DNA of 63,654 nt, filler included, from Reticulomyxa filosa (Eukaryota > Protista > Foraminifera): assembly GCA_000512085.1 (NCBI GenBank). It is 16 parts of 16 records of this genome, joined end to end, with 100 filler letters (N's around TTAATTAATTAA, not from the genome) between each part and the next. Parts side by side here need not be neighbours in the genome. Positions count along the whole stretch, not along the records: positions 1 to 6,390 come from ASPP01012705.1; 15 more parts are not named here. One strand, written 5' to 3'. The position numbers and the translations under genes were made by a program. Of this stretch, positions 1 to 6,390 are shown piece after piece. The notes beneath the pieces are model-generated. The model worked only from the letters and a program-made list of their open reading frames with translations, was not told the origin of the DNA and ran no database searches. Each line of letters begins with the position of its first letter. The first letter of the stretch is position 1.

Positions 1-35
<35 letters not shown>

Positions 36-3000
36 TAAAACGATTAAAGCTCCTCCAATACAAATGATAGCCAATGCAGCGTATTGGTCATGATCCCCAG
101 TAAAGACATCCTGGGAGACACTCAAAACGAAGATCCAGTCCAACTTGGTCCATTCCTCGTATTTTCTGTACTCATTCTGTATGTTATCCAATGTGTCTTT
201 GTACACGTACGCGGCAATGTCGGGATAGGCAAAGATCTGCTTCAAGAACTTCAACTGGTTGGGCTCGGGGATTTGGTTCGGTGAGGGCTGGATCAAGTAC
301 TGCGTGACGGCGGAGACGGCCGGGTCTTGCGACAAGGCGCCCTGGGTGACGTAGAGCGAGTCGTCATCGTAAGGGGATAGCGTGTTGGTAGTCAAGTTCT
401 GTGACGTGGATTCGATTAGATACCATTCGGACGTATTGGAATAGCGAGAGTTATTGTGACCATTGGTCAACGCGAACACGGAAAAGTTCAGCGACAACAT
501 GCCCGAAGAGTTCTGCGGCGATATGTGCAAGTTTGTGTGGTTTTTTTTTCGCAATGTGGGTAGGCCACTGGTGCTCCATATGTTCCAGAAGGCAACGTCG
601 GAGACATATTGAAAGGTCAGCAAAGCGCCGGCATACAATTTGTCTTCCATGGCGGATTTGTATATTCCCAAATAGCATACACTCCAGCCGCCGAAGCACG
701 AATAAGGTTTGGACCAGGCCCTATTATAACTGTACTTCATGTGATTTAATAACTCTTGGGCGGCGATATGTGTACTGCAATCTCGAATGATGTTATCGTT
801 GCTATTATCATTATTGGCACTACTCCCGCTCAACTCTTGCCAATACAAGCAATTGTTTTCATCAATCATGCTCGAATTGACTGATAACACGGAGGAATTG
901 ACCGACGCAAATCCGGCCTGGACATTGGCAGAAGCATTCACTATGATCATCCCCAATACATTGTATCCTTCCCAATATGTTTGCAACTGCTCTTGATTCA
1001 TGGTATAGTTAAAATTTTGCAACATCAAACGCGCTTTGAAGTACTCGTATTCCATCGACAGCTCTCCGATGCACGTCGATATCGACAGAAAGTTTTGTCT
1101 CATTTCGTCGATGGCACTGGAGACCAAAGATCGACATCCCGCGTAAGCCAGGCCCACGCACAACAGTATTGAGATGAACAACACAGTCTGCACGCGACCG
1201 GCAATGGACCCCCAATTCGTTTGCCAATTCGATATCCCGCGATTGAAAATCGATCGCATCAGCTGTGTCTTGATATTCGATTGCACCTGCTTCTTCTGCT
1301 CCTCTTTCCTCCAACTTATAATCTGCATGCGCGCCTGCTCGGCAGACAAGCTGTCCAGACCCATCATCACGTTCTTTGATGAGTGCGTGCCCACAGTGCG
1401 TGCACGTACCAAGCGTGCAGGCATGTCATTCACATTCTTCTTACTAAGTCTGGCCCATCCTTTTTCTTTCGTCGACAGCGTGATCGTCATTTCCGGTTCT
1501 TTTATTTTATTTTTTTTTTTGGAAGAAGAGTGATTGCTGCTACGTAATATATCGACGTCCTCATTATCATGATCATGATCATGATCATTGTCATTGTCAT
1601 CATCTGCAGCCAGTCCTGTATCTGCTGCTTCAACATCCCCATTTCTATGTCCATCTCTATTTGTATCTGTGTCAGCGCCGACGTCCACACTCACATGAGC
1701 CCCGGTGTCGGTGGTGTCGCCATGGCTTGGAGGATTGAGATCCAACAGCATATTTAACCGAGGGTTCTTTTCTATATTTTTCAGCACTTCATTTTTTTTT
1801 TTGCTCAGTTCCGACGGGTGCAAGCTGCCCAGTGAGTGTCTCCGTTGAATGGCCCTGGAGGCGGTACGTGTCTTGGAATTGCTTGTGCCATCGAGCAAGT
1901 CGATGGAGCCCATGCCTTTGAGAGTGACATCATTGGATTGTTTTTTGCCGAGTTGTATTTTCTTGAAGCCCAACGACTGTTTCAAGGTTCTGTCCTGTCC
2001 ACCAGACATATCAGCAGCGGCGGCATTCGTAGAGACAGCGTAATCGTCTGGATTGTTGACTTTGATGCCACGAATTTGATCGAGGATTTGTTCTTTGATG
2101 TTGTGCAGCTTGCTCGAGCTGGCATCTTCTTTGTCGTGCACTTGAGTAAAGCGATGGATGTTGGTGAAGAAGGGATGCAATCGATAGCGTTCGTCGGACG
2201 GGATGATAGGGACAGCTTGACCGATAAATCCTAAGGCGATAGCGAAAATGCATCCCAAACACGTAAGTACGATGACAACGTTGAGTGCGTCGTTGCCACT
2301 CTGATTCACTTCGCTCATGGGATACACGACCACACACCAAAAGTACATGGGTGAGACCGAGTGAAACGTGACTCGCTGTGTGTATACGTAGTACTCCTTA
2401 TGAGTATAAAGATAGCCCATGGAATAATTGATGTTGCTTCTCCATTTGTGCAGCTCGTCAACTGTTTTGGAAACCGCGTCCGAATGTGGAGTTACAATAC
2501 CGCCACTGGAACTGCCATTGCTCGTCAGAGCAATGCTGCTGTCGATATTCCCTCCGTGTAACGAAATGTTATAGTCTTTGAATCCTTGCGAACTCACAAA
2601 TACATCTCCGTAGTCATCGTCGCTGACCCAGTAGACGACCGCCTTCAAGTGCAGCTGCAATGATTGATACTTGGAATCGATTCGCGATGATCGTACAATG
2701 ACAGCCACCAGCTGCTCCTTCAATGAATTGTATTGCAGCTGCGCCATCCACACGCTTGGATTGATTCCTTTGAGCTTTGTGTCGTTGAACCAATACAATC
2801 TCTGATTGTTCTTTGTATCACTGCTATCATGGTTGCCATTTCTCCACATATCCAACAGCACATCATTCAAACACGCCGTGTTGAATTGCGTTATTACATT
2901 GACCATTTTCTTCGATGAATTATACTGTTGACAGAACAACTCGTCGGTTGAGTTTTTCAGGCTCAATGTCCCATCGCAAATTATCAGAGCACTGTTTTCC

Positions 3001-3452
3001 AGCATAATCCCTTGCACTTGCAGCTTATCCGTCGACAATTTCTTCATGGTAAATGCCCCATCTAAACCGGGATCCACAATGGTGGGAACAAAGTAATTAT
3101 TGTAGAAATTCTCCAATATCGTACTATTATTGATCGGCAAAGACATGTTGTACGCAATATCCAAAAATCTCTCTCTCGCGAAAAACGACTGACCTGCAAT
3201 CAACGATGTGGAATTACCCAGGATTTTGTCTCCCATTTTCATCACGCCTTTCACAGTTGCTTCCAAAGGCATGTTCAGCACGTTCCACGAAATGTATCCA
3301 CTAATAGCCACCACGCCGCAAAGCAGTATGGCCATGGCCAACATTATCATTCGAAACTCGCACTTGTAACAAAACAAAAAGTGTCCAACTTTGTTCTTCT
3401 TCTCCTCGTCTTCGTCTATGTCCCTGTCATCTTTGTCTTCGTCACTGTCGTC

Positions 3453-3484
<32 letters not shown>

Positions 3485-6350
3485 CTTCCACGCTGTCTTC
3501 CGCTTTCCTGACTCCTTTCGATTTGTGCGTGTCTTTCGTCTCCACTTCCGGCATCTTTTCTTCAAAGAGGAACACAGGTCGCAGCTGCCTCACTACGTCA
3601 CTCAACCAGGCGACCTTTGTATAAATAAGCAAGCAAAGAATAAGTATACAAATATAAATATAAGTAAAATAAATATATAAATATAAATATAAATATAAAT
3701 AAATAAATATATACAAATATATACATATATATATATATATATACAAATATATACATATATATATATATAATATTTATGTTATATTTATATTTATATATTT
3801 CAGTAACAACAAACCAACCATATTTCTTTCAATAATTTTGGACACATATTCTTCGGTGCCCAATAACAACTCTTCCTTTTGAAAGGCCTTGACTAGCTCT
3901 CTTTGAACGTCCGTGGCGGTAAAGTTTCCGTGCTGAGTGTTGTCGTAATTGGACAGGATATGAAAGGACTCATTCATTTCCGTGTACGGCGTCTGCGTGT
4001 TGGTGCGCATCGTGTCTGGTGCGTGGATGCCCTCGAGGGGCAGACTGGGGATATAGTTGTCGTAGAGATAGACCTTGAGTTCGCTGGGCTTGGCTTCGAG
4101 CAAACGGAAGCCGACAGACTTGTTGCGAGCGTAGTTTTGAAACATAGGAGAAAAGGATCTGCGATCCAAGATATGTTTGGACAAGTTGTGGGCGATAATT
4201 TGGAACAGCAGTTGAGGTTTATTGCGATAGACGCGCTGTGTGTCATCCACGCAGATGCCAAAGGTCAAATGGACGCGTTTGGGAATGCGCAAGCAGCCCA
4301 TGTCATACCAATTGGAGAGCAGGGTTTTATCGCGAAGGACTATATCTTTAGGAAAGATTTCGGGTGCTTCCTCTTCGCTCGTCAATGACGGGATCCCATT
4401 GTAGCCTTTGACGATCGCTCGTTTGATATGTGTCAGCACGCTGCGCTGCTCCAGATCTCGTATCGTCTTCGTCGCATCCAACTCGAGAGTGAAACTCAAT
4501 TGCAACTCTCCCACCAAGTTCGTACGATAATGCGTAAACACGTCTCGATACAATAGCACCGACAGAATGTTGTCAATTGCAAATATCCAACCACGATTGT
4601 CATGCGCAATCGCGTTGTCCTCTTTGCGCAACAATATCATTGCCGTTAACAATGTCGTCATCCCTGTCACGCCGAGCGTGTTACGCGTGTCGTTCTCGTC
4701 AAACGCCACCGTCAATAGCTGCTCATAGCAGTGCATTTCGTCGGCTGTTGGCGTCAGCTCAAATATTTGCTGGAACACACGCGGGTTATTCCAATAGTGC
4801 ACTGATTCGAAGTATGTTTCCGATTGCTGCAGTTGCTCGTCTTCGCGCGGCGTCCGCAACGACTTTGGCGTTAACGCGTCGTTTTCTATCACGGCTTGAG
4901 GCAAAGGGGTTGAGATGTCGCGTTCCGCCGGGGGCTTTTTTTTTTATTTTTAAAAAAAAAAAACAAAACTACTCTTCACAAAAGTTGTTTGCAAAAAAAA
5001 AATAAAATATATATATATATATATATTTATTTATATCACTGAACAATGTGAGACAGTTCTTTTTCAGTGATTTGACAAAGTCGATCTTTGCTCCATTCGT
5101 AAAGACCATTCGAGTCAAATTTATCAACACTGTTTAATAAACAACATTTTTTTTTTTTTTTTTAGAAAGGGAGACTATCTTCAAAAAAAAAAAAAAGAGG
5201 GTATTACAACATACAACGTACAGATCAAACAAAATATACAGAAACATAAAAGTATAAGGAATAAATATATAACGTAACAATCGTTTTAATTCAGCGTTTG
5301 GAGAAGTACCTCTCCTGAATATCTATTGTTTGGAGGGGAGGGGGAAAAAAAAAAAAAAAAAAACAAAGATTTGAGTTGTGTGTTGGATCACTATGCAATA
5401 TAAATGAACTAGCCACATTAGGAAGAAAAAAAACAAAACAAAACAAAAAATATCAATCATTTTTCTCCTTCTCCATCCCCTTTTTTTTTTTGTTGTCATT
5501 GTTATTGCTGTGTTGTTGTAAATTAGTGATTAACATTGTCTCTACTGCCGTGCTGAGTGAATTTGCGAAATAAAAATTGAATGTGTGCAGTGTGAATGAT
5601 AGCATCTTTGCGTTTGGGATGATTGAATGGATACATTGACGGGACATTTTTGATGTGTTCTTCCAATTCTTTTTTTATTACAATCGACGATGTCAGTTGT
5701 GCAGCTTTTCCAAGACATCGAACTTGGTGATATAAATAATCGGGTAGTGTTTCAAAGATATTGTACTCTGATTGTATTATTTATTATTATTAAGTGATAC
5801 ATGCATATACATATATATATATTTATATATATATATATATGTATATGTATATCAGTGTGCAGTTTATATATGTATATACACATATAATAACCTTGTTGCA
5901 AAAAATGTAAAACACAAAATAATCGTCGAATTTCGCCCATAATTTCTCCAATATCTGCGTCGTAGGCAAGCTTTTCCATGAAAACGTTGTTGAACACGGG
6001 CTTGGAAACATACTTGGCGGCGTACTCTTTTTGCTCGAATGTGTCGTGGAAAAGAGAGAGCGTTCGATTATCTCGCGCAAACTGGTCCGGATTTCTGGCG
6101 TTGATTCCAGAGATCAGATTCGCCTGTGGAGAATTCAATCCGTTTTCTATCTCCTCATCTTCAGTCTCTTTTTTTTCATCCTCTTTTTCGTCTTCTTCAT
6201 TCTCATTCTCCCCCTTTTCTTCCACATTGCTGTCGGGTATCATGTTTTTGTGCTTTCCATTGATATTGAATGACACTGTTTTTTTACTGCTTTTGGATTT
6301 TTTGTCTTCTACCTATCCAAGAATTTGTGAGGAATTCAAAAACAAAAACG
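1..6350 (-). CDS. Large multi-exon membrane protein, partial at both ends: unknown N-terminal cytoplasmic region followed by two TM-dCache-like-TM modules
   Basis: Manual minus-strand translation gives a continuous frame from 3614 to the window edge with no stop. It is joined by a phase-0 GT-AG intron (3615-3818; ERNM|VAWL) to the exon 3819-4934 and to further exons near 5040-5130, 5535-5770 and 5890-6350. Four hydrophobic helices; motifs AWSKPYSC, FWCVVVYPMSEV, DWIFVLSVSQDVF. Confidence 0.8.
3615..3818 (-). repeat. Intron filled with (TA)n and ATATAA microsatellite plus a short direct duplication
   Basis: GT..AG on minus strand; atacaaatatatacatatatatatata occurs twice. Confidence 0.75.
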
Positions 6351-6351
6351 T

Positions 6352-6390
<39 letters not shown>

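Follow-up and report, generated by a model that had tools for sequence, protein, structure and literature searches.

What kind of protein is encoded by a very long open frame that simply runs off the end of its contig? The frame in question belongs to the freshwater foraminiferan Reticulomyxa filosa (assembly GCA_000512085.1) and lies in a 63,654-nucleotide stretch of DNA, here called the window, that joins parts of 16 records of that genome. It sits on the minus strand of the first part, which is contig C12705 in its entirety (6390 bp, positions 1-6,390), and the coordinates given for it are positions in the window. The original prediction placed there a hidden exon of about 1,190 codons for a receptor with four transmembrane (TM) segments and a duplicated dCache-like sensor, possibly a chemoreceptor. 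The exon proved to be real. The receptor did not prove to be self-contained: four conserved exon blocks extend the gene upstream, and downstream it appears to continue into a 12-TM, two-repeat channel. We put a probability of roughly 0.7 on the reading that the large exon encodes the sensor half of a dual-dCache, two-repeat cation channel resembling voltage-gated Ca2+ (Cav) channels and two-pore channels (TPCs).

Reverse-complement translation from 3614 to the contig edge gave 1204 codons without a single stop, and from stop to stop the frame around the exon spans 1257 amino acids (aa). The list of open reading frames (ORFs) omits it because it runs off the end of the piece, as had been pointed out. 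A frame of 1191 codons open at about 45% G+C is far beyond chance. A database search matched the exon to the GenBank partial model RFI_16871 ("hypothetical protein, partial"; P0001) at 99% identity, and four paralogs in the R. filosa genome are 40-55% identical to it. The exon starts at 3614, exactly at a splice acceptor (AG at 3616-3615), and introns flank it on both sides; the exon is eukaryotic. Donor and acceptor of the upstream intron recur at the same positions in paralogs C6412, C10848 and C20344, and the codons 5' of the ATG used by GenBank (3554-3552) are conserved in the paralogs as well. The RFI_16871 model also excises 11 codons (720-752, minus strand) as a mini-intron right before the A-W-S-K-P-Y motif. 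This call is probably spurious because all paralogs retain residues at that place in the alignment.

Hydropathy located TM1, TM2 and TM3 where the original prediction had them, and every motif that it quoted was found in the translation. The extracellular domains (ECD1 and ECD2) are indeed rich in N-x-S/T sequons, with 11 and 10, respectively, against one in the 337-aa loop between TM2 and TM3; this distribution fits an out-in-out topology. The proposed TM4, however, is only half a helix: it has 14 residues, and a conserved phase-0 intron interrupts it where the contig ends. What completes it? Paralogs C6412 and C20344 carry the identical ...GGALI|GT donor, and the sequences diverge straight after it. 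On C6412, C7367 and C5331, the downstream (channel) exon is preceded by AG and opens with a conserved I-L/F-x-Y-I-Y-x-x-G-R/K-R-N-F. Judged by homology, such a start would complete a normal TM helix, with basic residues next. Contig C12705 ends in homopolymers on both sides (31 A's at 1-31 and 37 T's at 6354-6390). Evidently the assembly broke at these runs, inside an intron at one end and upstream of the gene at the other.

Is the sensor joined to a channel elsewhere in the genome? R. filosa has five sensor modules (C12705, C20344, C6412, C10848 and C22100), and a search with the first downstream ORF returned exactly five channel modules. Three sensor-channel pairs, on C6412, C22100 and C10848, are linked on one strand, either overlapping or separated by gaps of about 30-130 bp. 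The two remaining sensor contigs end at their edge, and the two remaining channel contigs, C7367 and C5331, begin at theirs, inside an intron. In the linked paralogs, the first ORF after TM4 (about 480-507 aa) has six hydrophobic segments along with a pore-like "SGENY" loop, and the second has weak EF-hand matches and a clear Ion_trans match (PF00520; E about 1e-22). By hydropathy, each channel repeat has six TM segments. Ion_trans is present in all three linked paralogs, in the GenBank protein RFI_06370, and in single ORFs from two other foraminifera, Nonionella and Bolivina. Sensor and channel are thus physically linked in three paralogs and encoded by single transcript-derived ORFs in two further foraminiferal species.

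Compared with sequences in the PDB, the channel half is closest to alpha1 repeats of Cav1.3, Cav3.2 and Cav1.2 (E about 1e-23 to 1e-25). Weaker matches were to bacterial Nav, CatSper and TPC2/TPC1 (E 1e-5 to 1e-7), with repeat I matching TPC2 at 5e-7. The pore of repeat II reads V-S-E-G-W, and its Glu aligns with the filter Glu in both repeat I and repeat II of Cav3.2. The pore of repeat I, S-G-E-N-Y, is conserved across the family. An S4 segment bearing Arg occurs in repeat II only. GenBank splits these genes, such that the "cation transporter" P0014 and RFI_06370 (P0013) are channel halves.

An exhaustive search of 1.84 billion representative proteins with an ECD2 profile retrieved only nine proteins, none of them a bacterial Cache protein. 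Among the nine were the EukProt proteins P0007 of Nonionella stella (2886 aa) and P0006 of Bolivina argentea (1609 aa). We compared the Reticulomyxa exons with P0007 one at a time. TM1-ECD1-TM2 matched residues 854-1303 (E 2e-29), and TM3-ECD2-TM4 matched residues 1482-1907 (E 3e-27). Directly after TM4, the Reticulomyxa downstream ORF aligned to P0007 with 43% identity (E 1e-85). P0007 is collinear with every part of contig C12705 and then runs on without interruption through a 6-TM repeat I, an EF-hand-like region and an Ion_trans repeat II. The Bolivina protein likewise carries sensor and channel in one transcript-derived ORF.

The upstream blocks tell the same story. A minus-strand ORF that ends at 3819 shares 56% identity with the N-terminus of paralog RFI_08245. 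The GenBank model of this paralog splices at the same site, and the domain encoded by the ORF matches P0007 residues 429-706 (32% identity, E 2e-34). The block at 5887-6243 matches P0007 residues 180-252 (45% identity over 75 aa, E 1e-12). Since the upstream blocks are conserved, share the minus strand and include one matching the Nonionella protein, we conclude that all of the 6.39-kb contig lies inside one R. filosa gene. An intron of about 110 nucleotides (nt) with (AT)n lies at approximately 5778-5886; paralog C20344 has one continuous ORF there (L016 5024-5443), and this intron is a presence/absence variant between paralogs.

Which channel contig carries the other half of the C12705 gene? 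In both ECDs, C20344 is nearest to C10848 (64%), while C12705 and C22100 rank among the most divergent copies. For the channel ORF, the copy nearest to C10848 is C7367 (79-81%), and C5331 is the most divergent. Congruence of these distances pairs C12705 with C5331. This 6170-bp contig encodes RFI_06370 (P0013, 100% identity), a model that starts at an internal ATG of a conserved exon: 17 conserved codons and an AG acceptor lie just 5' of it. There is moderately strong reason to place the channel half of the C12705 gene on C5331.

Do the extracellular segments have the fold of dCache sensors? AlphaFold2 (AF2) models were built from a 5-sequence alignment for ECD1 (pLDDT 59, pTM 0.61) and from 12 sequences for ECD2 (pLDDT 72, pTM 0.76). 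In both, an N-terminal helix of 40 residues leads into two alpha/beta modules. When the models were searched against the PDB with Foldseek, almost all top matches (E 2e-5 to 1e-3) were dCache ligand-binding domains (LBDs) from chemoreceptors, kinases and cyclases of bacteria. For ECD1, almost all of the top 50 were dCache LBDs (E from 2e-5, probability 1.0, full-length); for ECD2, the top match was the dCache domain of TlpC (E 1e-4, probability 1.0, full-length). VIA-align, a structural aligner independent of Foldseek, agreed. ECD1 gave Z 13.7 to the Mlp24 LBD (229 residues, 3.6 Å), and ECD2 gave Z 14.9 to Tlp1 (231 residues, 3.7 Å); the top 30 and top 32 matches, respectively, were all dCache or double-PDC sensors. 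The calcium channel subunit alpha2-delta and CACHD1 also appeared among the VIA-align matches, at Z 6-9 (8x90_B, Z 7.0 and 8.7; 8s7c, Z 6.3 and 6.8). A shape search of the ESM Atlas found dCache_1-bearing proteins and a heterolobosean cyclase cluster at TM-scores of 0.58-0.65, and language-model features also agreed with a dCache sensor fold. A single dCache fold covers the whole of each segment (335-348 aa), and the predicted models have the long helix and two stacked modules of this structural class, set between two TM segments. The long helix and double PAS-like fold expected by the original prediction are therefore well supported in both segments, as predicted structures.

Sequence searches gave a different picture. 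The Pfam Cache clan (CL0165), including dCache_1 (PF02743), yielded no match at E <= 10 to the whole exon, to ECD1, to ECD2 or to any of 12 family members. Across the exon, the ECDs, the loop and the N-terminal domain, the only Pfam match was a low-complexity CRA match (E 4.3), and the N-terminal domain (3819-4930) had neither a Pfam match nor a usable Atlas match. A PDB sequence-profile search with ECD2 returned nothing relevant. The amino-acid-binding dCache_1AA motif (Y-x4-R-x-W-Y...Y...D) is absent from the exon: the patterns Y....R.W[YF] and R.W[YF] found nothing, and the nearest match was "RLYW" in ECD1. VWA, VWA_N and VGCC_alpha2 had no Pfam matches, which sets the protein outside the alpha2-delta/CACHD1 class. 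Nor did HAMP, MCPsignal, HisKA or HATPase match in contig C12705, the paralogs or the full-length orthologs. The most conserved residues of the foraminiferal ECDs cluster in the membrane-distal module around W-S-x-P-Y/F. dCache ligands usually bind in the membrane-distal module.

The sensor had also been called duplicated. ECD1 and ECD2 showed no detectable similarity to each other, either by BLASTP or in a profile-profile alignment with hhalign. An internal duplication is possible, but the sequence lends it no support. A prediction of the ECD1-ECD2 complex scored 0.00, which speaks neither for nor against a pseudo-dimer.

Does the architecture occur outside foraminifera? A search with the P0007 channel half recovered P0016, a 1475-aa protein encoded by an uninterrupted ORF (51-58% G+C) on an unrelated eukaryotic contig of the Logan assembly SRR24392501 (L027). 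Pfam recognized dCache_1 in it (52.5 bits against a cutoff of 45), as well as MCP-like_PDC_1 and two Ion_trans stretches, in the layout dCache, TM, TM, dCache, TM, 2 x 6 TM. RPWY, S-P-Y and "LDW-hydrophobic-P" occur in canonical form in both sensors. The channel half has 34% identity to that of P0007 and a related pore I. A homology search with P0016 in a clustered protein database found only P0016 itself, and hhalign of the ECD2 profile against it gave a weak match confined to the last strand and TM (probability <1%). To judge from this protein's domains, the dual-dCache and channel architecture exists outside foraminifera in a form that Pfam can recognize. Because P0016 passes the dCache_1 cutoff with a matching architecture, the foraminiferal ECDs are likely to be true homologs of dCache_1. 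A 118-codon ORF in another frame (L027 2-358) abuts the start of the P0016 gene; it may encode the lost N-terminal part of P0016, with TM1 and the beginning of the first dCache, put out of frame by a frameshift.

How might such a protein work? The product would comprise about 2800-2900 aa. Its cytosolic N-terminal region would be followed by a first sensor (TM1-dCache-TM2), a disordered loop of ~340 aa and a second sensor (TM3-dCache-TM4); after these would come a cytosolic linker and then repeats I and II, joined by an EF-hand-like linker. We propose that it assembles as a dimer, as TPCs do, to form a four-repeat pore in which a ring of acidic residues would favor Ca2+; both dimerization and Ca2+ preference are drawn by analogy from TPC and Cav channels. 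Bacterial dCache receptors respond to a bound ligand with a displacement of their C-terminal TM helix. Binding of a small molecule to the dCache modules might similarly shift TM2 and TM4, and this shift could modulate gating through conserved juxtamembrane segments. The loop has two such segments, one after TM2 (2166-2216) and one before TM3 (1209-1265). Three cytosolic motifs are conserved from Reticulomyxa to Nonionella: A-V-P-I/L-I-P-S/A-D after TM2, an M-R-S-I-F-N-R helix before TM3, and R-R-N-F...W-E-D-E-Y after TM4. These segments are the likely couplers to the channel. Voltage and Ca2+ feedback would come from the Arg-bearing S4 in repeat II and from the EF-hands. Overall, the protein would be a chemosensory Ca2+-entry channel.

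Perhaps GenBank has it right, and the sensor is a stand-alone four-TM dual-dCache receptor whose channel is a linked neighboring gene, maybe regulated in trans as alpha1 is by alpha2-delta? The RFI_08245 model does stop 16 codons past ...GGALI, in-frame stops follow TM4 in paralogs, and the channel has annotations of its own ("cation transporter" and RFI_06370). Yet conservation between paralogs is seen in the AG-preceded exon that opens the channel and not in the read-through tails past ...GGALI. No promoter would fit into gaps of only 30-130 bp, conserved codons lie 5' of the internal ATG at which RFI_06370 starts, and two foraminiferal transcriptomes have sensor and channel in one ORF. We therefore regard separate genes as quite improbable. 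Pseudogene decay or chimeric assembly, either of which would leave the long frame without present function, is hardly credible. The contig is short, with homopolymers at both ends, and some paralogs have frame breaks inside their ECDs, but the frame has 1191 stop-free codons and splice sites that are both intact and conserved, its motifs and cysteines are conserved too, and it is collinear with orthologs that are expressed.

A subtler alternative accepts the fusion but not the sensing. The dCache modules could be a built-in structural or trafficking module like alpha2-delta, or one for adhesion or matrix contact, with voltage and Ca2+ as the sole gating signals. A structural ectodomain would fit the conserved cysteines and the heavy glycosylation that is predicted, alpha2-delta and CACHD1 are among the structural matches, and repeat II retains its Arg-bearing S4. 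The missing dCache_1AA motif and the strong divergence implied by the lack of a Pfam Cache match fit this idea too. On the other hand, conservation peaks in the membrane-distal module at W-S-x-P-Y/F, the usual dCache ligand site. The closest folds, at Z 12-15, are chemoreceptor and kinase LBDs, which score well above alpha2-delta, and the protein lacks the VWA/MIDAS domain through which alpha2-delta contacts alpha1. A purely structural role seems unlikely to us.

The sensor-channel reading itself has points against it. The C12705 copy lacks physical linkage to its channel half, and its pairing with C5331 depends on distance congruence among five taxa. A search for RNA data from R. filosa found none, so splicing from TM4 to the channel exon in this species is deduced from homology, and GenBank ends the sensor protein at the in-frame stop after TM4. 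The EF-hand matches in the paralogs fall under the Pfam cutoffs. The ECD1 model is of low confidence, and neither a Pfam Cache hidden Markov model nor a PDB sequence profile backs homology rather than a shared fold. Finally, ligand binding, coupling to gating, dimerization and ion selectivity are proposals.

How does the predicted protein compare with known systems? It resembles the dCache_1 LBDs of bacteria (Campylobacter jejuni Tlp1, 4wy9; Vibrio cholerae Mlp24, 6iop; Helicobacter pylori TlpC, 5wbf; Pseudomonas aeruginosa PctA, PctD and TlpQ) in its long N-terminal helix, its membrane-distal and membrane-proximal PDC modules, its placement between two TM segments, an S-x-P-Y-like motif, and a final W-hydrophobic strand that enters the membrane. 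It differs from them in sequence (6-12% identity, no Pfam or profile match). Moreover, it is eukaryotic, is predicted to be glycosylated, has two copies of the domain per chain, and has a predicted channel as output instead of a kinase, MCP, cyclase or GGDEF domain. Alpha2-delta and CACHD1 resemble it structurally and have an extracellular dCache tied functionally to a Cav-type pore, as the R. filosa domains would be. Alpha2-delta, however, is a separate polypeptide, glycosylphosphatidylinositol-anchored or single-pass, with a VWA inserted in one dCache that is nested in another, whereas the R. filosa domains have no VWA, follow one another, are each flanked by TM segments, and would be joined covalently to the pore-forming chain.

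Plant TPC1 has two 6-TM repeats with EF-hands in the linker between them. The channel half is like TPC1 and TPC2, and plant TPC1 in particular, in having two 6-TM Shaker-like repeats per chain, an EF-hand-like pair between them, and an Arg-bearing S4 in the second repeat only. It departs from TPCs in that its repeats are nearer to Cav alpha1 by sequence, with a Cav-like Glu in place of TPC filters, and in an additional N-terminal module of about 1800 aa with four TM segments and two ectodomains. P0016 has the identical order of parts, but it is compact, with a short loop between the sensors and no large N-terminal domain seen, and it keeps the RPWY and S-P-Y motifs. In the ESM Atlas, the closest structure (TM-score 0.65) was that of the heterolobosean guanylate cyclase cluster, another eukaryotic bacterial-type dCache ectodomain that Pfam does not recognize; its output is a cyclase, not a channel.

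The Cache domain takes its name from Ca2+ channels and chemotaxis receptors. If, more tentatively, the dCache modules gate a Ca2+ channel, the R. filosa protein would correspond in cis to the animal alpha2-delta/alpha1 partnership, to which it might even be related by evolution, and these amoeboid cells would gain direct chemical control over Ca2+ entry. It would also give a new output class to the largest family of extracellular sensors and a new gating module to the voltage-gated channel superfamily. Foraminifera are major marine calcifiers, and the protein is a candidate for chemosensory Ca2+ signaling in them. It would offer a tractable system in which to ask what Cache does to Ca2+ channels and whether alpha2-delta/alpha1 has an ancient cis form.

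Our full-text literature searches found no paper that joins Cache to two-pore channels, dCache to eukaryotic channels beyond alpha2-delta, or dCache_1 to Ion_trans, and none on such channels in foraminifera. All eukaryotic dCache_1 proteins found by Gumerov et al. 2022 (PMC8915833) carry a VWA insertion, and the ion-channel context of Cache listed by Upadhyay et al. 2016 consists of VWA_N and VGCC_alpha2 only. Among eukaryotes, Cache has so far been described only in the trans-acting alpha2-delta and CACHD1, where a VWA insertion is always present, and in a few kinases and cyclases (PMC8915833, PMC4822843). It is a tentative suggestion, and we hold it with some doubt, that foraminifera and at least one other eukaryote have an undescribed class of ligand-gated Ca2+ channel in which two bacterial-type dCache sensors are wired to a two-repeat Cav-like pore. 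The sequences are already public, but split into fragments and unnamed: the GenBank models RFI_16871, RFI_08245, RFI_06370 and "cation transporter" would all be pieces of larger genes. The name "HECT domain-containing family protein," given in GenBank to a paralog fragment from C22100 (P0003), does not fit, as Pfam finds no HECT domain in it.

Table 1. Features of the sensor gene on contig C12705, with positions in the window and the basis for each call
Feature	Position	Strand	Remarks
Start of the intron that splits TM4	1..41	-	Donor GT at 41-40, then a 31-nt homopolymer (poly-T) and the contig end
Large exon, 1191 codons, stop-free	42..3614	-	Acidic cytosolic stretch, TM1, ECD1, TM2, cytosolic loop, TM3, ECD2, first half of TM4
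N-terminal half of TM4, 14 hydrophobic residues	42..83	-	Hydropathy; predicted to be completed by the next exon, on another contig
ECD2, predicted extracellular double-Cache fold, 348 aa, 10 sequons	86..1130	-	Conserved Cys, W-S-x-P-Y/F motif; predicted model, structure searches
TM3	1137..1193	-	Hydropathy
Cytosolic loop, 337 aa, 1 sequon	1203..2213	-	Between TM2 and TM3; low-complexity, charged
TM2	2220..2288	-	Hydropathy
ECD1, predicted extracellular double-Cache fold, about 335 aa, 11 sequons	2289..3290	-	Predicted model, structure searches
TM1	3291..3350	-	Hydropathy
Cytosolic acidic low-complexity stretch before TM1	3351..3614	-	Contains ATG 3554-3552, used by the GenBank partial model
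Intron, 204 nt, GT...AG, phase 0	3615..3818	-	11% G+C, (AT)n-rich; position conserved in three paralogs
Exon, conserved cytosolic N-terminal domain, about 365 aa	3819..4930	-	Homology; 5' boundary approximate
Small conserved upstream exon block	5039..5150	-	tblastx to paralog C20344; boundaries approximate
Conserved upstream exon block	5529..5771	-	69% identity over 83 aa to C20344; boundaries approximate
First conserved exon block, candidate start ATG 6243-6241	5887..6243	-	P0007 match; ORF layout

Three of the paralogs have frame breaks inside ECD1 or ECD2: C6412 (L013 8014-9050), C10848 (L015 4790-4800) and C22100 (L014 7496-7553). The C10848 copy carries one TGA, and the GenBank model RFI_08245 is garbled at the site of the frame break. 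Sequencing errors or tiny introns might account for these breaks, or some copies may be decaying. An ORF that by eye resembles a fragment of a retrotransposon polymerase or integrase lies downstream of the paralog on C6412, on the minus strand at L013 3-500.

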